16,787 bases of DNA, taken from Octopus sinensis (Eukaryota). The position numbers and the translations under genes are program-made. Under the pieces are notes generated by a model that saw nothing but the letters and a program-made list of their open reading frames with translations, was not told where the DNA came from and made no database searches. This document shows, in pieces, positions 1,408 to 16,787 of the stretch; position 1 is the stretch's first letter; each line of letters starts with the position of its first letter. The DNA is taken from positions 1-16,787 of the forward strand of contig NW_021825070.1 of the NCBI RefSeq assembly GCF_006345805.1. Direction: 5' to 3'.

Positions 1408-1479
1408 AGTTTCTTTAGAATTGGAAGATCTTGGAAGATACCTTTCTCAATATGCGAAATATTATTTATGTGAAGAGAT
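1408..1479 (-). CDS. LRR exon E1 (class B), SLHINNISHIEKGIFQDLPILKKL
   Basis: 72 nt; acceptor ttttctgctgtAG, donor GTaagt; phase 2-2; no stop. Confidence 0.9.
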
Positions 1480-1590
1480 CTACAGCAGAAAACAAATATG
1501 ATAAATATTAATATAGAAATCATTTGTAAAAGTATATGAAAAACTTTTCTTTAACATGGGAGAATGGATGAGAAGACAGACAGCGAGAAA

Positions 1591-1745
1591 CAAGAAGAAG
1601 AAGAAGAAGAAGAAGAAGAAGAAGAAGAAGGAGACGAAGGAGGAGGAGAAGAAGAAGAAGGAGAAGAAGAAGAGAAAGGAGATGGAGGAGGAGAAGAAGA
1701 AGAAGAAAGAGAAGAAGGATGAAGAAGAAGAAGAAAACGGGAAGA
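1591..1745. repeat. (GAA/GAG)n purine microsatellite tract
   Basis: Visible AAG/GAG trinucleotide run; source of spurious poly-K and poly-S ORFs. Confidence 0.95.
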
Positions 1746-2074
1746 AGATATGTTTAAAGCTAAGATGTTAAAGAAAATAAATTCAGAGAAAGTACTTAAA
1801 AGATGACAACGAATAATTTGGAAGTTGAAAACGATCACATCAGATATTTTAAAAATCTAATATCAATGAAAGGATATCTGGGAAATCGATGCAAATAATA
1901 AGTGTTGGAGGAAGGAGAAGGAAATACGTGACTATAGTGTAAGTATTAGAATAATAAAATGAAGTGAATGAAGAAGTCGGAGAAGGAACTGGCAAAGAAA
2001 ACGGAAAAGGGCAACCGGTAGAAAAGAAATAAAATAAAATATGTTAATACAAATTACATAGTTTCATGTGTGAA

Positions 2075-2391
2075 GGCGCATGGCTCGGTAGTTAGAGCGT
2101 GTAGCTTACGATCATGAGGTTGTGAGTTCGAATCCCGGCCCGTGCTGTGTTCTTGAGCAAGACACTTTATTTCACGTTGCTCCAGTTCACTCAGCTGTAG
2201 AAATGAGTTGCGACGTCTCAGGTGTCAAGCTGTATCGGTCCCTTTGCCTTTCTCTTGGATAACACTGGTGGCATGGGGAGAGGAGGCGGTATGCATGGGC
2301 GACTGCTGACCTTCCAGAAACAACCTTGCCTGGACTTGTGTCTGGGAGGGTAATTTTCTAGATGGTCAGTATCATGACAGAGAGGGGTCTC
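2075..2391 (+). mobile_element. tRNA-derived SINE, family 1 (GGCGCATGGCTC... head)
   Basis: A-box-like TGGCTCGGTAGTTAGAGC and B-box GAGTTCGAATCCC; the body is shared with copies at 9982 and 14741. Confidence 0.88.
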
Positions 2392-2417
2392 AGATGTACA
2401 TGCAAACACTAACATTT

Positions 2418-2510
2418 ACACGAATATACCGCTATACACGAATATACCGCTATACACGAATATACCGCTATACACGAATATACCGCTATACACGAATATA
2501 CCGCTATACA
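2418..2510 (+). repeat. 18-bp tandem repeat (ACACGAATATACCGCTAT) x5
   Basis: Five perfect units plus ACA; one unit in the duplicate (15059-15076). Confidence 0.97.
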
Positions 2511-2724
2511 TTTTCGTTAATAAGTCTTTATGCAGACATATATATATATATATATCCTTGTCTAACACGGCTTTAGAAAAGTTCAAACAGATATTGTATC
2601 AATATGGGAACAGAATATGCGTTAGAGTGAAAAAATAGAGCGAGGGAAAGAGAAACGAGGGTACAGCAAAGTTACATAAAAATAACGTTCATAATGTAAT
2701 CTTAACGAAAGTGAACGAACTTAC

Positions 2725-2796
2725 AATTGCTGCAATCGGTAAAGGCCTTGGAAGCTTCCTTGTTCAATACTCGAAATATTATTTCCATTTAAATAC
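2725..2796 (-). CDS. LRR exon E2 (class A), YLNGNNISSIEQGSFQGLYRLQQL
   Basis: 72 nt; acceptor tttctttattgctgcAG, donor GTaagt; phase 2-2. Confidence 0.92.
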
Positions 2797-2930
2797 CTGC
2801 AGCAATAAAGAAACAGGATAACAGTGTTTATGGAAAATGCGTGTGATTACATATTGAAATGAAACAAACGATGACAAGACAGATTATGGCAACAGAAAAC
2901 AGAAAGAAAAACAAAGAGAAGACGACGAGG

Positions 2931-3092
2931 CTGAAAGAGAAGAAGTAGGAAGAAGAAGAAGAAGAAAAAGAAGAAGAGGGAGGAGGAGAAGAAGAAGGAA
3001 AAGAAGAAAAATAGAAGTAAAGGAGAAGAATAAGAAAGAGTTAAAATATGAAGGAAAAAATAAGCAGAAGTTGTAGTAGTAGTAGTAGTAGT

Positions 3093-3137
<45 letters not shown>

Positions 3138-3324
3138 ATAAATTCAGAAGAAGAAGAAGAAGAAGAAGGAAGAAGAAGAAGACGAAGAAGAAGAAAAAGA
3201 AGAAGACAAAAAAGAAGAAGAAGAGCAGAGGAGAAAACGACGCTCATGAAGAAGACCAAAATAATAAGTATAAGAATAATAATGAGTAAAATGTTAAGAT
3301 GATGATGATGATGATGATGATGAC
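2931..3324. repeat. Compound microsatellite region: GAA-rich, (TAG)n, (GAA)n, (GAT)n
   Basis: Directly visible; repeated at about 15530-15905. Confidence 0.9.
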
Positions 3325-3747
3325 ATTGATTATGATGTTGAAGGGGAATATCTGCGCGCGCGTGCGTGTGTGTATGCATGTGAGACATGTATTCCATCTG
3401 GGTAAAAGAATGATATGAAAACCGTGTAAAAATGTTTTTAGTAGCACGATTTTTTGTTAATAACTATGATTTCTGTTACAGATCCACTCAGACACCGACA
3501 GAGATACGAAATGAACCCACCACACACAGATACAAATATATATGTTCGCATAAAATAATACTCTCATGCACAACACATTTATTCATTCATACAGAGACAT
3601 GTACACTCCTACACGTCTTCATAATCATACAAACGGAGATATAATGGCAGAATATAAATCAGAAATGCAGAAAGAAAAATTAAGAAAGAGAAGACAAACT
3701 TTCTAGTGATATTACGTTAATAAAATATCAACGGAAATTGAACTTAC

Positions 3748-3819
3748 AATTTCTGTAAATTGGTAAGACTTTGGAAGGTTCTACGTTCGACTTTCTCGAT
3801 CTTATTATGCTCAAATGTT
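3748..3819 (-). CDS. LRR exon E3 (class C), TFEHNKIEKVERRTFQSLTNLQKL
   Basis: 72 nt; acceptor tgtttcatgttacAG, donor GTaagt; phase 2-2. Confidence 0.9.
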
Positions 3820-4527
3820 CTGTAACATGAAACAGATTATAAAGGAAATAATACAGAAACGGGGTCTGATAAAACATTAAATTTGAAGTTTTAAAATCAG
3901 AGGAGGAAAAGAGGGCTATGAAAGAAAAGCATGACAAAATTACCGAAGGGGACGATTTAGAGTGGGAGATAGAAGAGGAAGGTATGTAGGACCTGAGAGG
4001 AGAGGAAGAGCGGAAGTATGAAGTGGATAGGAGGGGGCGAGTACAAGAGGGAGCAGAATGTGGAATAGAGAGGCGATGCACAATGAGTAATTGAGCGGAA
4101 TTACTGAGGATGGTGAAGGAAAATAAGTGATGGAATGTATGGATTTATAAAAGTGCGAGTAAAATACGATGAAGCAAAAACGACGCATTAGAAATGGAAA
4201 AAGCAGCTGAAACTCTTTAAAAACGGAGAAGAAACACAAGATGGTGAAGATGAAGGATGTAGAGGGAAATTGTGAGGAAGACGAAAGATGCAGGAATGAA
4301 ACACATAGAAGAAGGAGGATGAGGAGAATAACAAGGAAAATCAGAATAGGGGAGAAGAAAATAAATATGAATATAAATAGTACAGTCACACATACATTTA
4401 TATGCGAATACACACATAGAATTTTGCCGAGGATATCTATCGCTGATGTTGATGCATCTACACATACCTTCACACGCATATCTTCACACATATACTCAAA
4501 CACTCTAACATAGATTTAAACAGAAAC

Positions 4528-4561
<34 letters not shown>

Positions 4562-4801
4562 TATGAATTAGAGAAGAATGAAGTTGGAAGTAAAGCAAAA
4601 TGGGGAAGACAATAAGTAATTAGAATTATCGTTGGATGATATTGCTAATCGTATAATGATGCAGCAGATAAATATAATAGGTTGTTAATATTGAGTGAGG
4701 AGAATTAAACTAGGGGAAGGAAGAATGGTGACGACGGAGAAAAGGAGAAAGAAGAGAATTACGATGAGAATTAGGAAGGGTGATATACAGAAATAGAATA
4801 T

Positions 4802-4841
<40 letters not shown>

Positions 4842-4919
4842 GTAGAAGAAGAAGAAGAAGAAGAAGAAGAAGAAGAAGAAGAAGAAGAAGAAGAAGAAGA
4901 AGAAGAAGAAGAAGAAGAA
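4802..4919. repeat. (TAG)n(GAA)n compound microsatellite
   Basis: Near-perfect runs, directly visible. Confidence 0.97.
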
Positions 4920-5339
4920 CAAAAAGAAAGCAGAAGACGGAGATGAAGAAGGTCTTTAAAACGAACATGATAAAGAAGATTAAAACAGAGATTAGTTAAA
5001 GAAATTTTAACTAATGACTCGGAGTATGAGAAGGTAATTTGGAGAAAGAGAACAAGTCGGAAACGAAAATCACAGATACACGCTGTCAGATACACACACA
5101 TGCACGTACAGCCTTGCACTGTGCAGTTACGCCTACACACTCACATTGATACATTGAATTACACTCAACCGCAAATTTGATGAGAGCGAATATAAGTTTA
5201 AAAGGGAGAAGGAGCATGAGTATATATTAAATATCTATATTATCAGTGAAAGGGTATTTTGAAAATTAATCTAAACTACGAGTGCTGGAAGCTGAAACCT
5301 TTTACGAAGAGAAGTATATTTGTGACTATATTCTAAGTA

Positions 5340-5891
5340 GTGGGTTGTCCGGAAAGTTCGTGCCAATTTTTAAAGGAAAGTAAAAGGTCAAACAATACTT
5401 GCCATTACATTTTTAATCAACCAAATATGAACCATTTTCTTGCACAATGCGTCTCCATCTTTCCTTTAAATGAAAAACACCCTCTTGCCAGAATTGAGGT
5501 GTTTTCATGGCAAAGAATTCATCAAAAATTCAAGAAATTGAAACTTTTATGATTAAGACTATTCTGCAGATACCTGAATAAGTGGAAATTCGAAGTAGCA
5601 GTATCTGGTGAATATGGAGGGTGGGGTAACACATCCAAGCCGAGCTGCAGTCATTTTTGTCTGGTTCCCAAAGCATAAAGTGTCGAAAATGAACTTTCTT
5701 ATCTTCCATTTTAAAGGGATACAAAATTAACACTGGTTATAGGAGCATAAACCTTTTTCCATGCAAAGATGGCTTAAACTGTGCTCTAAATGGAAGTGTA
5801 GTCTAATCCTATTTTATGGACTCAACCATGTTCTAAAATAAGTCGAAAGGTAAGCTACTATAAATCGGCACGAACTTTCCGGGCAACCCAA
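5340..5891 (-). mobile_element. Internally deleted mariner (552 bp) with both TIRs
   Basis: TIRs (G/T)TGGGTTG(T/C)CCGGAAAGTTCGTGCC(A/G)ATTT at both ends, flanked by TA (5338-5339, 5892-5893). Minus-strand remnants: N-terminus MEDKKVHFRHFMLW joined to LDVLPHPPYSPDTATSNFHLFRYLQNSLN, and C-terminus EFFAMKTPQFWQEGVFHLKERWRRIVQENGSYLVD*. Confidence 0.93.
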
Positions 5892-6321
5892 TATTTGTAT
5901 TTTACACTTCTGCATCAACCAAATATATATATATATATATATTTGCTGTATTAGCAAAAGCCGCTGAAGTGAATGAAGAAGTTGAAGATGAACAGAACTC
6001 GGAGGAAGAGAAGACGAAAAAGTCCAACTCAGAGAAAAGAAAAAGACATCATTTATGAATACAAATTTTATAGTCACATATACACACAGACTCTAAAATA
6101 TACATGGGCATACATTTCCATTTATAAGATTTGCTGCAGACATATATAATATCCCAGTTGTACTCGTCTTTAGAAACAATCAAACAGATATTGAACTAAT
6201 ATGGGAACAGAGTGTGAGATGAACTGATAAAAAGAGCGGGGGTCGAAAAACGAGTGAACATTAAATTTGGTGAACAATTACATTTATAATATTGAAACTA
6301 CAAAGATGTAAAAAGACATGC

Positions 6322-6394
6322 AATATGTATGACCAAGAAAGACCATTTGCAGCTTCCTTGTCCAGTACACAAGATGTTATATCTGTAAACATAT
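6322..6394 (-). pseudogene. Decayed class A LRR pseudo-exon (E4)
   Basis: Aligns to E2/E6/E8 (shared GGACAAGGAAGCT core; reads YVYRYNILCTGQGSC..) and has class A intron flanks. It is 73 nt long, the acceptor reads CAC instead of CAG, and the donor reads GCATGT instead of GTAAGT. Confidence 0.8.
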
Positions 6395-6884
6395 GTGTAA
6401 CAGCATAGAATGGTAACATTTGTCACGGAAAATATTTGTGATAAAAAATTGAAGAATTTGTGTTTGAAATGAGACAAACGATGAGAAGATATATCATGAT
6501 AAACAAAAACATAACCAAGAAAATGAAGAAAAAGAAGTAAAAATGAAGAATAAGAAAAAGAAGAAAAAGGAGAAAAAAAAGAGACGAAGGAGAAGAAGAA
6601 GAAAACGAAGGAAAGTGCTCGGGGAAGAAGAAAATCAGTTTAAGGAGAAGTAGAAGTAATAAAGAAGAGAAATTAATATAAAAAGAGGATGTAGAAAAAG
6701 AAGACAGAGAAGAAGAATAGAGGGAAAAGAAGCCGGAATAGGGGATGAAAGAGTAAAGGGAAAAGTAGAGGGAAAAGGAAGAAGTAGAACAACTACAACA
6801 ATACATGAACAACAGCAAGAAAACAACAGAGATTTATTTTTGTTTACACTTTTTCGAATCAGTGACTTTTCATCACTGGAAAAA

Positions 6885-6886
<2 letters not shown>

Positions 6887-6944
<58 letters not shown>
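6887..6944. repeat. (TA)n(TG)n microsatellite
   Basis: Directly visible. Confidence 0.95.
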
Positions 6945-7310
6945 ATTGGGAAGCCCTTCACATCGACAACCGGTGATTGTCACACGCTGATGACGGATCA
7001 ATACCCAGAAACCCGGGTCCGTGTGTATCACGTCAGATCGAAGATGCGAAGGATGGCTTCCCTTTGCAAATACTGATAGGGCACAGAAAGTGTGTCTATA
7101 GCCAGCTGGAGGAGGTGTCTCTCCGGGGCTACAAGGTACAGTAGCATCCATCCTTAAGGGTTATCCACATTTAAGTGGCAAATATACTTCACGATGTCGT
7201 GCAGCTACTGTTTATACCTCGTTCAGAGATTTATTTTACACATACACACATATATATATTATACATATATAGGTTTATAGGTGCAAAAATTGCGTATAAA
7301 TTTGTGAGTG

Positions 7311-7383
7311 GGCTGTTTTGCTTAAATGGTAAAGCACGTGAGCGGTAATCAATTGGATGTGAGTTCGAGCCTCATGGCTGCTT
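7311..7383 (+). pseudogene. Degenerate tRNA-like cloverleaf (tRNA pseudogene or SINE head; nominal anticodon GGT)
   Basis: Canonical spacing: D stem GCTT/AAGC, T stem GTGAG/CTCAT with loop TTCGAGC. The anticodon and acceptor stems are weak and U33 is absent. Confidence 0.45.
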
Positions 7384-7534
7384 GCTGACAATTGTTTTCC
7401 GCTTTATATGGATATTTTATCCTGTCGCTGCTGTTCTATCAGCTCTTCTGCGTTTGAAAATCAGTTATTACCTTATCTGTATCCTACAATACACTTCTAT
7501 GCTTGTAAAAACAAACATTAGTTTGTTTACACGC

Positions 7535-7547
7535 GCACACACACACA

Positions 7548-7578
<31 letters not shown>

Positions 7579-7593
7579 CCACACACACACACA

Positions 7594-7650
<57 letters not shown>
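7535..7650. repeat. (CA)n(TA)n microsatellite
   Basis: Directly visible. Confidence 0.95.
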
Positions 7651-7655
<5 letters not shown>

Positions 7656-8017
7656 TTAATTGTATATATTCACTTCATTTCCATAATACAAAATCTCTGT
7701 AGTTGCATAAATGTTTCATTTTCTCATGGTAAAATTTCTAACATTCCATGAAAAAGTGTGTTGCTCCCATTGTGTGTTGGTACGTTTGCCAGGCTGTGTG
7801 TACGCATGTCGGTAGATATTTCATTGGAGGAGGGAATGATTTATAAACCGTGAGAAATAATTAAGATCATTATTTACTGCTAATGACTATGATTGTTCTT
7901 ACACACGCATAGGAACTCAAGAATGCAGGAACATTCACACACACAGAAATACAAAGATGCGTATTCACATAGAATCATAATCAGTTAGACAAAATCTTGA
8001 GAATAAGTTAGATAGAA

Positions 8018-8048
<31 letters not shown>

Positions 8049-8129
8049 TGAGACTGAGTAAAAAAGAGAAGACATATAAATTATAGAGGTAGTACATTAA
8101 AAAATATTACCAACAAAAGTTGAACTTAC

Positions 8130-8201
8130 AATATCTCTAAACTGGTAAGGTTATGGAAGATTCGGTGATCGATTTTTTCGATCGTATTATTCTTCAAATA
8201 T
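8130..8201 (-). CDS. LRR exon E5 (class C), YLKNNTIEKIDHRIFHNLTSLEIL
   Basis: 72 nt; acceptor tgttttatgttacAG, donor GTaagt; flanks homologous to E3/E9; matches the end of track ORF 8126..8623. Confidence 0.92.
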
Positions 8202-8444
8202 CTGTAACATAAAACAATGTATAAAGGAAAGTGTAAATGAAAGTTTTCTGGTAAAAGAAGGCCAAGAAGATGATGATGATGAAGCATAAGAAGAAAGGCA
8301 AAAGAAAATGAAGATTTAAAAGGTAAGAGATGAAACAGAAAAAGGAAAGGAAAAAGACGAAGGAGATGAAACAGAAGAAACGAAAGGAGATGAAAAACAC
8401 GAGCAAGGAAAAAGAAAAAGAGGAAGAAAAAAGACAAACATGAT

Positions 8445-8461
8445 AAATAATAATAATAATA

Positions 8462-8505
<44 letters not shown>

Positions 8506-8551
8506 TAATAATATAATAATAATAATAATAACAATAATAATAATAATAATA

Positions 8552-8582
<31 letters not shown>

Positions 8583-8588
8583 AATAAC

Positions 8589-8622
<34 letters not shown>

Positions 8623-8716
8623 TAATAATATAATAATAATAATAATAACAATATAATAATAATAATGATAATAATAATAATAATAAATAATAATAATAAT
8701 AATATAATAATAATAA

Positions 8717-8747
<31 letters not shown>

Positions 8748-8795
8748 AGAAGAAGAAGAAGAAGAAGAAGAAGAAGAGAAGAAGAAGAAGAAGAG
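8445..8795. repeat. (AAT)n (~270 bp, interrupted) followed by (GAA)n
   Basis: Directly visible. Confidence 0.96.
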
Positions 8796-9054
8796 CAATA
8801 GCAACATCAGTAACAATGATAACTACAACAAGAAGAAAAGTAGGGAAAAAAGAAGAGGGAGAACGCGGAAACAAAGAAGAGAAAGACTACGAAGAAGACG
8901 AAAAAGACGAATAAGAAGAAGTAATCATACAGATATATTACCAATATGGGAGCAGATTATGAGTTAGTGTGATGAAAAGAGCGAGGGAAAAGTGGAATTA
9001 AATTATAGAAAAATATGAAAAATCATATTTTCTTAATAAAACTGAAGAACTTAC

Positions 9055-9126
9055 AATATCTTTAGTCTAGAAAGATCCTCGAAGCTTCCTTGTTCAATAC
9101 TCGAAATATTATTTCTGTATAAGTAT
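9055..9126 (-). CDS. LRR exon E6 (class A), YLYRNNISSIEQGSFEDLSRLKIL
   Basis: 72 nt; acceptor ttctttactgctgcAG, donor GTaagt; phase 2-2. Confidence 0.92.
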
Positions 9127-9177
9127 CTGCAGCAGTAAAGAATAATGATAATATTTGTTATGGAACAAGGATAAAAC

Positions 9178-9318
9178 GAAGAAAAAGAAAAGAAGCACTA
9201 GAAGAAAAAGTACAGGAAGAAGAAGAAAAGCAAGAAGAAGAAAAAGAGAAGAAGAAGAGCAAGAAGAAGAAGAAGAGCAAGAAGAAGAAGAAGAAGAAGA
9301 AGAAGAAGAAGAAGAAGA
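9178..9318. repeat. (GAA)n-rich tract
   Basis: Directly visible. Confidence 0.93.
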
Positions 9319-9981
9319 TAAGGATTGTTGAAAAGTGGTAAAAGGTAACCGAAAATATAGTTAAAGGTAAGGAGACGCTTTCGAAGATTGAGAATGGACT
9401 TTGAAATAGAGAGAACATGATGGGAAAATAACACAGATGCACCTAATCACATACACATATATGCATATAAATCATACACGCATACATTTATGTACAGATT
9501 GTAAAAACGTAGTTCAGATATACCCATATTTCACACACATATTCACACACATATTCACACACACACGAAAATATGGTGAGAGAGAATATCCGTTTAAAAG
9601 GAAAACGCGACAGAGTCAGAAGCATATGAAAATGTGGAATATTATGGGGCCTATGATGCAAATTGCAAGTGCTGTAAACTGATGACGTTTACAGAGAGAA
9701 ACGAATTAGTGAGAATTGTTATAAGCATTTATTTTGCGTTATCTCATAAATAATGCAGTTATTTCAATTGGACGAACCAAAAGCCGAAGGGGGCGGGATA
9801 AACTACTTACACGAACTTGTTATAAAATCAGGTTGTAATTTTACTTTGTACTTATTCTTAGTTCAAGATATGAATAGTGCAGTTCAATTTAACGCTTACT
9901 TTTTCAACGTTCTAATGCAAGTGACAAAAGAGCATACTGAGAATATTTTATTGTATATTCTGCTTCTATATCTAAGGTGAA

Positions 9982-10316
9982 GGTGCATGACTCAGTGGAT
10001 AGAGCGTCGAGCTTACGATCGTGAGGTTGTGAGTTCGAATCCCGGACCGGGCTGCGTGTTGTGTTCTTGAGCTAGACACTTTATTTCACGCTGCTCCAGT
10101 TCACTCAGCTGTAGAAATGAGTTGCGACGTCACTGGTGCCAAGCTGTATCAACCTTTGTCTTTCCCTTGGATAACACTGGTGGCGTGGAGAGGGGAGGCT
10201 GGTATGCATGGGCGACTGCTGGCCTTCCATAAACAACCTCGCCCGGACTTGTGTCTAGGAGGGTAACTTTCTAGGTGCAATCCCATGGTCTGTGTCGTGA
10301 CCGAAGGGGGTCTCCG
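9982..10316 (+). mobile_element. tRNA-derived SINE, family 1, full length with target-site duplication
   Basis: TGACTCAGTGGATAGAGC A-box and GAGTTCGAATCCC B-box; 8-bp TSD AAGGTGAA at 9974-9981 and 10317-10324. Confidence 0.92.
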
Positions 10317-10661
10317 AAGGTGAATGAATAAAATTGAAATGAATAGAAAAAAATTGGAGGAAGAGAAGCCAGTAAAGAAGAATAATGGAATGAAAATGGA
10401 TGAGTAAAAATGGGTCCGAACTATTTAGTCAAAGCCACATAAGGCAGAATTCACATGCATAGGAACATACATGTAACATTTCTATGTTTTGATGTTTACA
10501 TAAAATTCCAGTTGTGCTCATCTTTATAGATTCAAGAGAATATAGCTCAAATTTAAGGACAGAAAATGTGTAAGAATCAAAAGAGATGAGAATGAACGTG
10601 TAACACATTTATAGAAATTTTGCATTCATAAAGTTGTATGAACTAAAATAAACAAACTTAC

Positions 10662-10733
10662 AATTCCTTTAAACTTTGAAGACCTTGGAAGATTTCTTTC
10701 GAAAAATGCGAAATGCTGTTTCTGTGAAGAGAC
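10662..10733 (-). CDS. LRR exon E7 (class B), SLHRNSISHFSKEIFQGLQSLKEL
   Basis: 72 nt; acceptor tcttttctgctatAG, donor GTaagt; flanks homologous to E1. Confidence 0.9.
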
Positions 10734-10841
10734 CTATAGCAGAAAAGATATACGATAAATGTTTGTATACAAAATATTGGTAGGATAATAATAAAATAGG
10801 AGAGTGGGTGAGAAGAGAGATTGCGACAAATAATAATAATG

Positions 10842-10842
10842 A

Positions 10843-10928
<86 letters not shown>
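10842..10928. repeat. (TAC)n(AAT)n microsatellite
   Basis: Directly visible. Confidence 0.95.
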
Positions 10929-11565
10929 GAAGGAGAGTAAGAAGAGGGGAAAGAAGAGGTGGATGAAGAAGGAGTAGAAGAAAAAAGAACAGGAAGAAGA
11001 AAAATAAGAATTATTTTAATAAGGAGTTGTCGAAGAAGACAAAGAAAACGCGCAAATATGATGAGAGAGAATGTATTTCATTAGAGAAAGGGTAGCTAGT
11101 AAAATGATGCAAGTTACGATTGCTAAAATCTAGTATTGCTTGGAAAGAGAAAGAAATATGACTATATTCTAAGTACTTATATATTTCACGTCTCCATCTA
11201 TAAGTTGCAGTATTAGAGAAATAACCTGAAGCGAAAGAGGAAGTTGGAGATGAATAGAAGAATTCGGTGGAAGAGAGGACGGACATGGTCAAGCTATACA
11301 TATAGTCATATTTACACGCAGACACTAACATGTACATAAACTTACACATATACATTTTCATTGATACGTTTTGCAGTAGACATATATAATATCCCAGTTG
11401 GACTCGCCTTCAGAAGCCACCAAGCAGATATTGTGCCAATATTGGGAGAGAATATGAGTTAGAAGGCTACAAAGTTAGGGAAAGTGAAACGAGAGGACAG
11501 AAAAGTTATGTAAGAATAACATTCATCATACATAATATAGTATCATCGAGACTAAATGAACTTAC

Positions 11566-11637
11566 AATAATTGTAATCGATAAAGACTTTCGAAGCTTCC
11601 CTGTTCAATACTCGAAATATTATTTCCGTTTAAATAT
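11566..11637 (-). CDS. LRR exon E8 (class A), YLNGNNISSIEQGSFESLYRLQLL
   Basis: 72 nt; acceptor ttctttattgctacAG, donor GTaagt; phase 2-2. Confidence 0.92.
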
Positions 11638-11756
11638 CTGTAGCAATAAAGAACAAGGGTAAGAATCATGGAAAATATTTGTGACAACATATGCAATAAT
11701 TATAGGTCTGAATTGAAATAAACAATGACAAGGTATATTGGTAAACACGAAGAAAA

Positions 11757-12212
11757 GTAAGAGGAAGGAGGAGAAGTTGGAGGAGGAGGAGGGGGAGAAG
11801 AAGAAGAAGAAGAGGGAGGAGGAGAAAAAGAAGAAGGAGAAGAAAACGAAGAAGAAGAAGAGGACGGAGAATGAGAAAAAGAAAGAAGAAAAGAAAAAAA
11901 GAAGGAGAAGGTGAAGAAGAAGAAAAAGAAGGAGGAGGAGGTGAAGGAGGAAGTAGAAACGAAAAAGTAGAAAAAGAAGAAAAAGAAAGACGAAGAAAAA
12001 GAGAAGAAGAGAAGAAGAAGAAGAAGAAGAGGAGGGAGAAGAAAGAAGAAGAAGAAGAAGAGGGAGGAGGAGAAAAAGAAGAAGAAGGAAAAGTAGAAGA
12101 AGAAGAAGAAGAAGAAGACGGAGAATGAGAAGAAGAAGAAGAAGAAGAGGACGGAGAATGAGAGAAGAAGAAGAAGAAGAAGAAGAAGAAGAAGAAGAAG
12201 AAGAAGAAGAAA
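11757..12212. repeat. ~450 bp almost pure polypurine (GAA/GAG) tract with internal sub-repeats
   Basis: Directly visible; GACGGAGAATGA recurs three times and GAAGAGGGAGGAGGAGAAAAAGAAGAAG twice. Confidence 0.95.
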
Positions 12213-12799
12213 AAAATACAAAGAATAAGAGGAAAATGAATAGGGAAAGAAGTTGTTTGTTAAGAGGTAGTTGGGGACAAAAGTAGGCACAAAGACCCTC
12301 ATATATGCATATACATGCATCATACGACGGACTGGAATTGATGGACGTGAGGCAGAAGGAAAAGTCAGGCGCACGGCGTGCCACAGGTTTATACTGAGTT
12401 TTAAACCATGTGCTTTGTAACAACATTCCTTCTACACAAACTGCTGTCCCTGGATTATATATGTGTATGTGTCTGAGTGTGCGTGCGTGTGTGTGAGTGG
12501 AAATGCGAATGTGTGTGATCATATATATGTGTGCGTCAGCTCAGAGATGTTCTGAAATGTTTTCTTCGGGAAAGCGAATTCCTTTGTGACATCTGAGTCC
12601 TAAACAATAGGCCATCCATGAATATTTATAAAATCTTATAATTCCCTGCGTGAAGTAACTCTCGATGAAAGTATATTGCTCACACTTTTTCGTTCGTGTA
12701 AAACAGTGTAAAACAATTATTCTGATAGTTTGGTTTTCTGTAAGTATGTGCCTTCTTACAAACACAGGCATAATTGTACACGCCACACACAGATACCTG

Positions 12800-13012
12800 T
12801 TCCTTCCTACTCTAGACACAAATCCCGAAATTGTCGGGGAGGGGCCGGTCGATTAGATCGACCGCAGTATGCAACTGGCACTTAATTTATCGACCCTGAA
12901 AGGATGAAAGGCAAAGTCGACTTCCGCGGAATTTGAACGCAGAACGTAAAGACAGACGAAATACCGCTAAGCATTTCGCCCAGTGTGCTGAGAATTCTGC
13001 CAGCTCACCGCC
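12800..13012 (-). mobile_element. tRNA-derived SINE, family 2 (GGCGGTGAGCTGGCAGAA... head)
   Basis: Minus strand begins GGCGGTGAGCTGGCAGAATT..., has B-box-like GCGTTCAAATTCC and body GTCGACTTTGCCTTTCATCCTTTC...GTCGATCTAATCGAC. It resembles an abundant octopus SINE (recalled, not searched). Confidence 0.85.
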
Positions 13013-13020
13013 TTAAAAAC

Positions 13021-13152
13021 TTTCGTTTCTACTTTAGGGACAAGGCCCCAAAATGTTGGCAATGGGGCCCGTTGATTAGATCGACCACAGTACAAAATTA
13101 ATACTTAATTTATCGACTCCCGAAAGGTGGAAAGACAAAGTCGACCTTGGCG
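13021..13152 (-). mobile_element. 5'-truncated second copy of SINE family 2
   Basis: Shares GATTAGATCGAC, TTAATTTATCGAC and AAAGTCGAC blocks with 12800-13012, same orientation. Confidence 0.8.
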
Positions 13153-13386
13153 CCTTTGTTGACATGTTCACACTCATGCATACGTTCATTATCATACGCA
13201 AAATTTTTGTTTATTCACACACGGACACACACACACACTCGTTCACATCTTCATACAATCACAAACGAAAATATAATAACAAAATATATATTAGAATGGC
13301 AGAGAGAGAGATAACAAGACAGAGAAGACATGAAATTTCTAGTGATATTCCGTTAGCAAAATATTATCAACAAAAATTATACTTAC

Positions 13387-13458
13387 AATTTTTGTAAATT
13401 GGTAAGTCCTCGAAACATTCCACTTTCGACCTTTTCGATTTTATTATATTCCAAAGTT
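13387..13458 (-). CDS. LRR exon E9 (class C), TLEYNKIEKVESGMFRGLTNLQKL
   Basis: 72 nt; acceptor tgttttatgtgacAG, donor GTaagt; flanks homologous to E3. Confidence 0.92.
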
Positions 13459-13819
13459 CTGTCACATAAAACAGAATATAAAACAAATAATATATAAACA
13501 TTTGTAGTCTTAAAATAAAACGGAAAAAGACGGCTATGAAAGAGAAAAGCGTAATGATGATAATAAGGACGAGGAGGGAAGGGGGAGAATGTGGAATAAA
13601 GAGGTGAAAGACCAGGAGAAATTGAGCGGAATTTGGGAGGTGGGGAAGGAAAATGTCATAAAACATAAAGAACTATAGAAGTGGCAAGAGAATATGAAGA
13701 AAGGAAACGACGCATGGAAAATGGAAAAAGCAATAATTTTTAAAAGGAAAGGAACAGAAGGCGATGAACAATGAAGAAGAGGAAAGGTGCAGGAATAAAA
13801 CCCATAGTAGAAGGACGTG

Positions 13820-13837
13820 CTTCTTCTTCTTCTTCTT

Positions 13838-13902
<65 letters not shown>

Positions 13903-13904
13903 GT

Positions 13905-13939
<35 letters not shown>

Positions 13940-14078
13940 TTGTTACTACTACTACGACTACCAGTAGTGGTAGTACTAGTAGCAGCAGCAGCAGTAGTAG
14001 TAGTGGTAGTAGTTGTAGTAGTAGTAGTAGTAGCAGTATTAGTAGTGGTAGTAGTAACAGTAGTAGTTGTAGTAGTAG
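13820..14078. repeat. Inverted microsatellite: (TTC)n(CTA)n facing (TAG)n
   Basis: The arms are reverse complements around ACTACC-AGTAGT-GGTAGT (about 13957-13974). Confidence 0.9.
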
Positions 14079-14140
14079 AAGCATAGGTAGTGGAAGAGGT
14101 GAATAACAAAATGTAGATAAAGAAGAGGAAGCAGAAGATA

Positions 14141-14400
14141 ATGATGATGTTGATGATGATGATGAAGAAGACGAAGAAGAAGAAAAAGAAGAAGAAGGAA
14201 GAAGAAGGAAGAAGAAGGAAGGAGAAGGAAGAAGAAGAAGAAGGAAAAGAAGAAGAAGAAGAAGGAAGAAGAAGGAGAAAAAGAAGAAGAAGAAATGAAG
14301 AAGAAGAAGAAGGGAGAAGAAGAAGAAGAAGAAGGAGAAGAAGAGAAAGAAGAAGGAAGAAGAAGAAGAAGAAGAAGAAGAAGAAGAAGAAGAAGAGAAG
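14141..14400. repeat. (GAT)n then (GAA/GGA)n tract, abutting the duplication junction
   Basis: Directly visible. Confidence 0.93.
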
Positions 14401-14740
14401 AAACAGAAAAGATATGTTTTTAAAGCTAAATGTTAAAGAAGATAAATTCAGAGAAATACTTAAAAGATGACAACGAATAATTTGGAAGTTGAAAACGATC
14501 ACACTCAGATATTTTAAAAATCTAATATCAGTGAAAGGATATCTGGGAAATCGATGCAAATTATAAGTGTTGGAGGAAGGAGAAGGAAATACGTGACTAT
14601 ATTCTAAGTATTAGAATAATAAAATGAAGTGAATGAAGAAGTCGGATATAGAATTGGCAAAAAAAAACGGTAAAGTGCAACTGGTAGAAAAGAAATAAAA
14701 TAAAATATGTTAATACAAATTACATAGTTTCATGTGTGAA

Positions 14741-15032
14741 GGCGCATGGCTCGGTAGTTAGAGCGTCTAGCTTACGATCATGAGGTTGTGAGTTCGAATC
14801 CCGGCCCGTGCTGTGTTCTTGAGCAAGACACTTTATTTCACGTTGCTCCAGTTCACTCAGCTGTAGAAATGAGTTGCGACGTCTCAGGTGTCAAGCTGTA
14901 TCGGTCCCTTTGCCTTTCCCTTGGATAACACTGGTGGCATGGGGAGAGGAGGCGGTATGCATGGGCGACTGCTGACCTTCCAGAAACAACCTTGCCTTCT
15001 AGATGGTCAGTATCATGACCGAGAGGGGTCTC
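14741..15032 (+). mobile_element. tRNA-derived SINE, family 1 (duplicate of 2075-2391, with a 25-nt deletion)
   Basis: Same insertion site (CATGTGTGAA|GGCGCATGG) as the 2075 copy; lacks GGACTTGTGTCTGGGAGGGTAATTT. Confidence 0.88.
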
Positions 15033-15117
15033 AGATGTACATACAAACACTAACATTTACACGAACATACCGGTATACATTTTCGTTAATAAGTCTTGAT
15101 GCAGACATATATATATA

Positions 15118-15151
<34 letters not shown>

Positions 15152-15326
15152 CCTTGTTAACAAACATAAAGGCCTTTTAGAAAGTTCAAACAGATATTGT
15201 ACCAATATGGGAACAGAATATGCGTTAGAGTGAAAAAATAGAGCGAGGGAAAGAGAAACGAGGGCACAGCAAAGTTACATAAAAATAACGTCCATAATGT
15301 ATCTTAACGAAAGTGAACGAACTTAC

Positions 15327-15396
15327 AATTGCTGCAATCGGTAAAGCCTTGGAAGCTTCCTTGTTCAATACTCGAATATTATTTCCATTTAAATAC
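15327..15396 (-). CDS. LRR exon E10 (class A), duplicate of E2; 70 nt as assembled (two 1-nt deletions)
   Basis: Splice sites intact; identical to E2 apart from AAAGGCC>AAAGCC and CGAAAT>CGAAT (+ strand). Either sequencing error or a fresh frameshift. Confidence 0.6.
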
Positions 15397-15677
15397 CTGC
15401 AGCAATAAAGAAACAGGATAACAGTGTTTATTATGGAAAATGCGTGTGATTACATATTGAAATGAAACAAACGATGACAAGACAGATTATGGCAAACAGG
15501 AATAACAGAAAGAAAAACAAGAGAAGACGACGAGGCTGAAAGAGAAGAAGTAGGAAAGAAGAAGAAGAAAAAGAAGAAGGAGAGGAGGAGGAAGAAGGAA
15601 AAGAAGAAAAATAGAAGTAAGGAGAAGAATAAGAAGATTTAAAATATGAGGAAAAATAAGCAGAAGTTGTAGTAGTA

Positions 15678-15716
<39 letters not shown>

Positions 15717-16328
15717 AAGATTCAGAAGAAGAAGAAGAAGAAGAAGGAGAAGAAGAAGAAGACGAAGAAGAAGAAAAAGAAGAAGACAAAAAAGAAGAAG
15801 AAGGAGCAGAGGAGGAAAACGACGCTCATGAAGAAGACACAAAATAATAAGTATAAGAATAATAATGAGTAAAATGTTAAGATGATGATGATGATGATGA
15901 TGATGACATTGATTATGATGTTGAAGGGGAATATCTGCGCGCGCGTGCGTGTGTGTATGCATGTGAGACATGTATTCCATCTGGGTAAAAGAATGATATG
16001 AAAACCGTGTAAAAATGTTTTTAGTAGCACGATTTTTTGTTAATAACTATGATTTCTGTTACAGATCCACTCAGACACCGACAGAGATACGAAATGAACC
16101 CACCACACACAGATACAAATATATATGTTCGCATAAAATAATACTCTCATGCACAACACATTTATTCATTCATACAGAGACATGTACACTCCTACACGTC
16201 TTCATAATCATACAAACGGAGATATAATGGCAGAATATAAATCAGAAATGCAGAAAGAAAAATTAGAAAGAGAAGACAAACTTTCTAGTGATATTACGTT
16301 AATAAAATATCAACGAAATTGAACTTAC

Positions 16329-16399
16329 ATTTCGTAAACTTGGTAAGACTTTGGAAGGTTCTACGTTCGACTTTCTCGATCTTATTATGCTCAAATGTT
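16329..16399 (-). CDS. LRR exon E11 (class C), duplicate of E3; 71 nt as assembled
   Basis: Splice sites intact; reads TFEHNKIEKVERRTFQSLT, then three 1-nt indels (net -1) near the donor. Confidence 0.6.
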
Positions 16400-16787
16400 C
16401 TGTAACATGAAACAGATTATAAAGGAAATAATACAGAAACGGGGTCTGATAAAACATTAAATTTGAAGTTTTAAAATCAGAGGAGGAAAAGAGGGCTATG
16501 AAAGAAAAGCATGACAAAATTACCGAAGGGGACGATTTAGAGTGGGAGATAGAAGAGGAAGGTATGTAGGACCTGAGAGGAGAGGAAGAGCGGAAGTATG
16601 AAGTGGATAGGAGGGGGCGAGTACAAGAGGGAGCAGAATGTGAATGAGAGGCGATGCACAATGAGTAATTGAGCGGAATTACTGAGGATGGTGAAGGAAA
16701 ATAAGTGATGGAATTATGGATTTATAAAATTGCGAGTAAAATACGATGAGCAAAAACGCGCATATAGAAATGGAAAAAGCAGCTGAA

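Follow-up and report, generated by a model that had tools for sequence, protein, structure and literature searches.

The 16,787-nucleotide stretch of DNA analysed here (hereafter, the window) most probably carries an internal segment of a conventional leucine-rich repeat (LRR) gene with one exon per repeat, lying within one long minus-strand unit and duplicated internally; we give this reading a probability of about 0.7. An nhmmer search of the window, with a profile built from eight intact exons plus 25 nt of flank, returned 11 homologous cassettes, every one of them encoded by the minus strand. Ten matched at E-values of 1e-21 to 4e-31 and the eleventh, the relic E4 (aligned at 6411-6314), at 1.5e-7, with no further match at E < 1 across the window. 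An exon scan for 72-nt stretches between AG and GT that carry an LRR motif and stay open in phase 2 recovered eight exons on the minus strand, together with one spurious match per strand. None of the 11 cassettes shows up in the ORF listing of the window, and their start-to-start spacing is 0.90-2.58 kb. An earlier reading of this DNA from its letters (the sequence-only reading) had proposed just such a set of 11 minus-strand cassettes, about 0.9-2.5 kb apart and hidden from ORF finding, and our searches agree with it on both counts. Genes of this design are missed by ORF-based or weak gene models, which would give the locus some value for annotation.

The cassettes sort into three types, A, B and C. 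The eight intact exons, each detected on the minus strand by both the exon scan and nhmmer, are E9 (type A, 13387-13458, TLEYNKIEKVESGMFRGLTNLQK), E8 (type B, 11566-11637, YLNGNNISSIEQGSFESLYRLQL), E7 (type C, 10662-10733, SLHRNSISHFSKEIFQGLQSLKE), E6 (type B, 9055-9126, YLYRNNISSIEQGSFEDLSRLKI), E5 (type A, 8130-8201, YLKNNTIEKIDHRIFHNLTSLEI), E3 (type A, 3748-3819, TFEHNKIEKVERRTFQSLTNLQK), E2 (type B, 2725-2796, YLNGNNISSIEQGSFQGLYRLQQ) and E1 (type C, 1408-1479, SLHINNISHIEKGIFQDLPILKK). All are exactly 72 nt long and in phase 2, each comprising one nucleotide, 23 codons and two nucleotides, and all share one orientation, an acceptor consisting of a pyrimidine tract and AG, and a GTAAGT donor (8/8). 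The previously proposed one-repeat, phase-2 exon of about 72 nt thus describes these eight precisely, and the length is off in the remaining three cassettes, E10 (70 nt), E11 (71 nt) and E4 (73 nt). Each exon encodes one 24-residue repeat, and the introns interrupt the codon for Leu 4 of the LRR. Because the flanking introns are in phase 2, all exons are symmetric (2-2), and serial splicing would build a continuous solenoid. The locus follows the exon-per-repeat design of LRR genes of the LGR, Slit or ROCO style.

Splicing E1-E3 and E5-E9 in genomic order yields a peptide of 191 amino acids that forms a regular 24-residue LRR solenoid and matches Pfam LRR_8 at 4.3e-54; L6, N9, I11, F19, L22 and L1 are kept in all eight repeats. 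A single-sequence AlphaFold prediction of this peptide (pLDDT 88.3, pTM 0.85) places a beta-strand every ~24 residues. Judged by its repeat consensus and modelled fold, the predicted protein belongs to the 'typical' 24-residue LRR class. Foldseek and PDB sequence matches are extracellular LRR domains of the same class, including those of the Nogo receptor, LGR4/5, IGFALS, LRRC15, LRIG1 and TLR3/13. The peptide also contains six N-x-S/T sequons, which hint weakly at an extracellular location.

Searches of the reachable collections returned no close relative. A word-index protein search gave three matches at 29-37% identity, and an exhaustive HMMER protein search gave 91,245 LRR matches, none with an identity above 40%; the named ones were Branchiostoma 'LRRC15/slit-like' proteins and uncharacterised proteins of Amphiura. 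With no match above 40% identity, these searches therefore point to neither an orthologue nor a class. Metagenome scans with a 35-nt core of the type-B exon and with back-translated peptide patterns gave no match, and an exact look-up of two long ORFs of the window in public assemblies gave no record. A Pfam scan of stop-free, non-low-complexity segments of at least 28 amino acids on the gene strand found no domain other than LRR. No cap, TM, 7TM, TIR or Ig exon was detected in the window, with limited sensitivity for short cap exons.

The cassettes have been copied together with their introns. Self-BLAST recovered alignments of 170-850 nt at 65-77% identity surrounding paralogous cassettes, with intron identities of 74% for E3/E9, 69% for E2/E8, 68% for E1/E7, 71% for E2/E6, 77% for E3/E5 and 66% for E2/E4; the 250-nt downstream flanks gave local alignment scores of 50-85, against 12 +/- 2 in a shuffle null. 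This bears out the earlier proposal that hundreds of base pairs of flanking intron were duplicated with each cassette, but not the graded series of ages that accompanied it: there is one near-identical pair of segments, and all other introns are 65-77% identical. The three exons E3-E2-E1 derive from an old duplication of the block E9-E8-E7. Across 69 codons, a very small data set, the two blocks show a dS of 0.72, a dN of 0.14 and a dN/dS of 0.19, with purifying selection significant by Fisher's test (p = 2e-5). The block has therefore been maintained rather than churned, and the 'active' birth-and-death suggested by the sequence-only reading does not fit this main duplication. A cassette that did die is E4 (6322-6394, minus strand, 73 nt, type B, found by nhmmer), in which the acceptor AG has become AC and the donor GTAAGT has become GCATGT, one base has been inserted and the LRR consensus is eroded; the sequence-only reading had rightly called it dead. 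The middle block (B-A-B) is at odds with a simple A-B-C unit history.

We propose that the window is the interior of a single long minus-strand transcription unit, whose ends would lie beyond the window and whose exons would be spliced constitutively to encode the LRR domain, most likely extracellular, of a conventional LRR protein. The array would have grown by unequal recombination inside the gene, exons being copied along with introns: a three-exon A-B-C unit was duplicated long ago to give E9-E8-E7 and E3-E2-E1, and E6, E5 and E4 are additional A and B copies of similar age. Eight exons have been retained under purifying selection, and E4 has lost its splice sites and decayed. The copy at the window end has two candidate origins, an assembly artefact or a tandem duplication of very recent date, joined through microsatellite sequence at a period of ~12.6 kb. 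Should this reading hold, the locus offers a textbook case of LRR domain growth, in which symmetric phase-2 exon blocks were copied with their introns and then held under purifying selection, leaving one relic behind.

The near-identical segments span 2.6 kb on the minus strand. Copy A (1586-4211) contains E3, E2, one SINE and introns, and its low-coordinate end falls within a (CTT)n tract. Copy B (14260-16787) contains E11 (type A, 16329-16399), E10 (type B, 15327-15396) and the same SINE, and continues past the window end. Copy B is separated from the E9 upstream intron by a palindromic microsatellite (13820-14097), in which (CTA)n is followed by its reverse complement in arms of ~134 nt; this position makes it a candidate breakpoint or mis-join. 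As written, both exons of copy B are frame-broken: E10 equals E2 less two homopolymer bases, with zero substitutions, and E11 is a copy of E3 with indels clustered at its 3' end that retains its acceptor AG and GTAAGT donor. Outside microsatellites, the copies differ by 34 indel events (29 of them of 1 bp) versus 19 substitutions, the missing bases being absent from B 23 times and from A 11 times; within one stretch of 882 nt, there are 11 indels and a single substitution. Judged from these differences, the indel-dominated pattern is a consensus-error signature, and the frame breaks in E10 and E11 are for that reason probably errors. At the copy A/B rate, about ten indels would be expected in the eight intact exons and none is observed (P = 3e-5), which confines the errors to copy B; that copy may be misassembled. 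The sequence-only reading had taken the pairs E2/E10 and E3/E11 as young products of evolution, but the 11:1 ratio over 882 nt points to assembly or consensus error; the same ratio disfavours real pseudo-exons as the leading reading. A joint rescue of the frame by E11 and E10 (71 + 70 = 141 nt) fails, since the shifted junction reads T|GT ATT TAA, a stop.

Other differences between the copies look real. Substitutions are distributed as a mosaic, two segments differing at 0.3% and a third at 2.3% (p = 1e-4), and copy B has a 25-bp deletion in the SINE and one minisatellite unit versus five in copy A. Copy B is thus a distinct molecule, a paralogue or another haplotype, and no simple re-read, and a genuine recent duplication is possible behind it. 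A serious alternative, although we would not bet on it, is that E10 and E11 are no separate genomic copy at all: 14260-16787 would then represent the E3-E2 region a second time, from another haplotype or from a chimeric or low-coverage read, mis-joined through microsatellite sequence, and the real array would there have nine cassettes. The excess of indels, overall and within the 882 nt, with copy B mostly the shorter, and their absence from the eight other exons would both follow this expectation, as would the haplotype-like mosaic of substitutions, the low-complexity junction beside the palindromic microsatellite, and the fact that copy B reaches the window end exactly. However, false haplotypic duplications are usually adjacent, and these copies are separated by 10 kb of distinct sequence; moreover, an identical arrangement is expected from unequal crossing-over at the (CTT)n tracts that lie upstream of the cassettes. 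Sequence at the window edge with a consensus-error signature is the sole evidence for 'ongoing' turnover and, as it stands, should not carry a claim of recent evolution.

Several known systems resemble the array in part. A passage of PMC11378527, citing Koo 1991, gives one LRR per exon of ~72 nt, with introns all in phase 2, for the gonadotropin receptors. LGR-type receptors (glycoprotein-hormone receptors, LGR4-6, relaxin receptors and molluscan GRL101) share one-LRR, ~72-nt, phase-2 exons with the array, and LGR4/5 ectodomains are among the top sequence and fold matches of its peptide, although IGFALS and LRRC15 outscore LGR4. These receptors have 10-17 LRRs, with which the 8-10 uncapped LRRs of the array are compatible. 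Of the LGR/GRL101 hallmarks, the window shows no LRRNT cap with hinge, LRRCT, LDLa or 7TM exon; these would lie past its ends, which leaves membership of the LGR family a possibility. Introns of the array can be aligned between repeats, which points to internal duplications younger than are known from vertebrate LGR genes. Slit genes also have 72-bp single-LRR exons (a literature text search returned nothing on this point), and the array motif NNISSIEQGSF resembles the Slit type NKISxIExGAF. Slit LRR domains contain ~4-6 repeats between Cys-rich LRRNT and LRRCT caps, whereas the array runs through eight consecutive intact LRR exons from E9 to E1 (ten with E10 and E11) with no intervening cap-like exon detected, at limited sensitivity for short caps, which speaks against a Slit architecture.

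In the ROCO genes of brown algae, each LRR is likewise a 72-bp phase-2 exon, and exons are tandemly duplicated and shuffled within the gene (PMC11378527). The array shares the exon design and the tandem duplication. ROCO proteins are cytoplasmic LRR-ROC-COR proteins with documented alternative splicing and positively selected concave-face sites, whereas the host of the array looks animal-like (mariner, SINE), its LRRs are of the extracellular 'typical' class and selection on them is purifying. Agnathan VLR loci similarly cluster many LRR modules, and the fold matches of the peptide include VLR structures. VLR cassettes, however, are donor fragments without splice sites that are copied somatically into an incomplete gene; the intact cassettes here are complete repeats with pyrimidine tract, AG and GTAAGT in a common orientation and phase, which rejects somatic assembly of this kind. 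Exon duplication has likewise given Dscam1 tandem arrays of homologous, equally long exons. There, the alternatives all specify one and the same portion of a domain and a single one is used, whereas neighbours in the array are of three subtypes and are jointly predicted to form one solenoid. An inverted-repeat search for docking or selector elements found only microsatellite pairs among its longest matches and yielded no candidate, microsatellites having swamped the search.

These comparisons bear on the proposal, advanced by the sequence-only reading, that the locus encodes a recognition receptor for immunity or chemosensation, in which active gain and loss of cassettes lengthens and remixes the LRR ectodomain, possibly with variable or combinatorial exon use in the style of ROCO or Dscam1. 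We consider this unlikely. Phase-2 symmetry would indeed let any subset of exons be skipped or duplicated in frame, introns are copied with exons, E4 is dead and a near-identical pair of copies exists. There are precedents in the brown-algal ROCO genes, with the same 72-bp phase-2 design, shuffling and alternative splicing (PMC11378527), and in a snail, whose resistance to parasites has been linked to GRL101-like LRR-GPCR genes that are clustered and polymorphic (PMC12297450). The old paralogues, however, are under purifying selection: at a dN/dS of 0.19 and a dS of 0.72, again from the very small set of 69 codons, they lack the excess of non-synonymous change expected of a diversifying receptor, and their 18 differences among 69 compared residues are not enough to ask whether change is concentrated on the concave face. 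The older duplications form no age continuum, the sole young event is indel-dominated and error-like, and the three subtypes among neighbouring cassettes are what serial repeats of one solenoid, not interchangeable alternatives, would show. A bolder form, in which the near-identical copy is real and marks the edge of a tandem array of ~12.6-kb units with eight LRR exons each, variable in copy number between individuals and combinatorially spliced, strikes us as very improbable. Were it true, a mollusc, perhaps a cephalopod, would diversify an LRR receptor repertoire through the choice of exons, much as an animal counterpart to brown-algal ROCO exon shuffling or Dscam1 would; variable exon use or copy number, if shown by transcripts or populations, would greatly raise its importance. 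We give least credence of all to the idea that the entire array, as a pseudogene or an exonised repeat, has lost its function and is decaying. One dead and two frame-broken cassettes, the repeat load of the window and the lack of a matching database protein would suit such a remnant, but in 8/8 older cassettes the exact length, the open frame, AG and GTAAGT have survived ~30% intron divergence, and both the low dN/dS and the predicted regular solenoid speak against it.

The window carries a heavy load of transposons and microsatellites. Its SINEs gave no ARAGORN or Rfam match, and its mariner remnant matches SETMAR-like fragments only, at 38-40% identity. The gene strand is pyrimidine-rich over nearly the whole window, with exceptions around 5-6 kb, 7-8 kb and 12.5-14 kb.

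The window most likely (probability about 0.7) lies inside a single conventional LRR-protein gene of many exons and probably covers an extracellular domain, in which each symmetric phase-2 exon encodes one repeat and an array enlarged by old exon-block duplications is held by purifying selection. The surrounding sequence is eukaryotic DNA rich in AT, microsatellites and transposons, and the window contains no credible long ORF. A scan for 72-nt stretches between AG and GT that are open in phase 2 and carry an LRR motif identified eight exons, every one of them on the minus strand: E9 (13458-13387), E8 (11637-11566), E7 (10733-10662), E6 (9126-9055), E5 (8201-8130), E3 (3819-3748), E2 (2796-2725) and E1 (1479-1408). 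All have a pyrimidine tract and AG before them and GTAAGT after them, and each reads as one base, 23 codons and two bases, so that the intron divides the leucine codon at LRR position 4. With a profile of the eight exons, each extended by 25 nt of flank, the window gave exactly 11 matches, again only on the minus strand; this search added E10 (15396-15327), E11 (16399-16329) and, as a weak match, the relic E4 (6411-6314; E = 1.5e-7), and found no further cassettes in the window at E < 1. The sequence-only reading had described 11 minus-strand cassettes of about 72 nt that escape ORF finding. Their number, strand, spacing (0.9-2.6 kb between cassettes) and invisibility to ORF finding are confirmed, and eight are exactly 72 nt long, but E10 and E11 measure 70 and 71 nt as written. 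The gene strand is pyrimidine-rich nearly throughout the window, with exceptions at about 5-6 kb, 7-8 kb and 12.5-14 kb, which is consistent with one long transcription unit.

The cassettes fall into three subtypes with the consensus sequences xxExNKIEKVE... (type A; E3, E5, E9, E11), YLxxNNISSIEQGSF... (type B; E2, E4, E6, E8, E10) and SLHxNxISHI... (type C; E1, E7), and are ordered along the gene as A-B, A-B-C, B-A-B (the last one dead) and A-B-C. Exon nucleotide identity between the two A-B-C units is 78% for E3/E9, 85% for E2/E8 and 78% for E1/E7. In self-BLAST, the introns around paralogous cassettes are alignable over 170-850 nt, with identities of 74% (E3/E9), 69% (E2/E8), 68% (E1/E7), 71% (E2/E6), 77% (E3/E5), 66% (E2/E4) and 68% (E1/E2), and alignment scores of the downstream flanks are 50-85, compared with 12 +/- 2 in shuffles. 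Thus, a three-exon block was duplicated with its introns included, as the earlier proposal of cassettes copied together with flanking intron had held. The two block copies differ by a dS of 0.72 and a dN of 0.14 (dN/dS 0.19; Nei-Gojobori, 69 codons; Fisher p = 2e-5), values that point to an old duplication of which both copies have been maintained; their amino-acid differences (18 of the 69 residues compared) are too few to test site by site for diversifying selection. The array is therefore old and constrained rather than subject to the "active" birth-and-death previously suggested. Similarly, the older homologies all lie within a single band of 65-77% identity and hence form no continuous young-to-old series, contrary to the graded range of cassette ages that had been described. 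The death of E4, in turn, was recognized correctly: its acceptor has changed from AG to AC and its donor from GT to GC, and one base has been gained.

The type-B exons E2, E8 and E6 share a common 35-nt core at exon nucleotides 14-48 (2749-2783 in E2, 11590-11624 in E8 and 9079-9113 in E6). Only 2 of its 35 sites vary, compared with 18 of 37 elsewhere in these exons (Fisher 4.6e-5, for a stretch picked post hoc), and the same holds for third codon positions (1/11 in the core, 7/12 in the rest; p = 0.03). This pattern suggests short-tract gene conversion or a constraint at the nucleotide level, for example a splicing enhancer. A TCG serine codon, which contains a CpG, is retained in all type-B and type-C exons.

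The segment 14260-16787 (copy B), with E11, E10 and a SINE, matches 1586-4211 (copy A), which contains E3, E2 and the same SINE; the similarity runs off the window end. The near-identity of E2/E10 and E3/E11 noted earlier falls within these copies, and the "newborn" pair rests on suspect sequence. Joined as written, E11 and E10 produce a stop codon (T/GT ATT TAA). Real paralogues or alleles usually show several substitutions for each indel. In a unit-cost alignment of three non-microsatellite segments, copies A and B differ by 34 indel events and 19 substitutions: 11 indels, all of 1 bp, and 1 substitution in 882 nt; 11 and 3 in 331 nt; and 12 and 15 in 661 nt. The missing base lies in copy B at 23 indels and in copy A at 11. 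This excess of indels and the deletion bias in copy B are the signature of an unpolished long-read consensus. At the copy A/B rate, about 10 indels would be expected in the other eight exons (576 nt), and none is observed (P = 3e-5); the sequence problem is therefore confined to copy B. A perfect 18-bp minisatellite (TACACGAATATACCGCTA x 5.2) occupies 2417-2510 in copy A, whereas copy B has just one unit of it; five units versus one is a real structural difference. In addition, the copy B SINE has a 25-bp deletion relative to copy A, and substitutions reach 2.3% in one segment but 0.3% in the remaining ones. Copy B is thus more than a second reading of copy A; it would be either a very recent real paralogue with a poor consensus or another haplotype, misplaced.

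The inner end of copy B lies within (CTT)n sequence. Long gene-strand (CTT)n tracts (1592-1735, 2938-3224, 8718-8794, 9178-9318, 11796-12211, 14164-14402 and 15543-15803) occur no more than about 0.7 kb upstream from the acceptors of most cassettes (E1, E2, E5, E6, E8, E9 and E10). They often continue into (CTA)n or (ATT)n, are inherited with the cassette duplications, strongly skew strand composition, and are a possible substrate for unequal crossing-over. If copy B is real, such an exchange between the tracts preceding most cassettes could account for the offset of about 12.6 kb, and would have duplicated an eight-cassette unit in tandem. Copy B is separated from the intron upstream of E9 by a palindromic microsatellite (13820-14097), in which (CTA)n is directly followed by its own reverse complement (arms of about 134 nt, 82% complementary); it may mark a rearrangement breakpoint or a site prone to hairpins, or may be an artefact of a chimeric read.

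The eight intact exons, joined in their genomic order, encode 191 amino acids that match Pfam LRR_8 (4.3e-54). AlphaFold, run on the single sequence, predicts a solenoid with a beta-strand every ~24 residues (pLDDT 88.3, pTM 0.85). The top sequence matches among solved structures (IGFALS, LRRC15, LGR4/5, TLR13/3 and LRIG1) and the top fold matches of the predicted structure (Nogo receptor, LGR4/5, LINGO-1, LRIG1 and VLR) place the putative product among generic extracellular LRR proteins of the "typical" class and single out no one family. A Pfam scan of stop-free, non-low-complexity gene-strand segments returned LRR_8 alone, with no cap, LDLa, Ig, 7TM or TIR exons in the window. The protein collections searched yielded no close relative (best identities 29-40%), public assemblies no exact matches to two long window ORFs, and metagenome scans with the type-B core and back-translated peptide patterns no matches; a literature search found no published description of this locus.

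The array shares its one-repeat, symmetric phase-2 exon design with gonadotropin and other LGR receptor genes (PMC11378527), and the 72-bp phase-2 LRR exons of brown-algal ROCO genes (PMC11378527) are strikingly alike in both length and phase. GRL101-like genes form polymorphic clusters in a snail (PMC12297450), and a paper on octopus GPCR expansions mentions LRRs for some adhesion GPCRs only (PMC6408891). Given 8-10 uncapped repeats in a row, it is reasonable to suspect an LGR/GRL101-type receptor; the 7TM, cap and LDLa parts defining that type fall beyond the window, and the gene is thus not assigned to it. A Slit-type architecture is disfavoured because at least eight repeats run uninterrupted by a cap exon. 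VLR-like and Dscam-like mechanisms are unsupported: every intact cassette has canonical splice sites, which speaks against the former, and adjacent cassettes belong to different subtypes, which speaks against the latter.

The SINE-like element is present in three copies (2070-2394, 9977-10317 and 14736-14996) and carries a tRNA-like GGATTCGAACTCACAACC box, with no call by ARAGORN or Rfam. Copies from independent insertions are 84-88% identical; 2070-2394 and 14736-14996, the latter with the 25-bp internal deletion, are one insertion duplicated within the 2.6-kb segment. A second short interspersed repeat lies in the E9-E8 intron as adjacent copies (12800-12921 and 13022-13145; 77% identical), and a further tRNA-like fragment in the E5-E4 intron at about 7290-7400. 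A mariner-type transposase (Pfam Transposase_1, PF01359; 2.2e-8), decayed and interrupted by frameshifts and stop codons, lies at 1-1000 on the plus strand; its closest database matches are anonymous SETMAR-like fragments (38-40% identity). The E4-E3 intron contains a mariner-like element with an internal deletion (5335-5896), which has 38-nt terminal inverted repeats (5335-5372 and 5859-5896; 87% complementary) and retains the transposase motif remnant PYSPD...FHLF.
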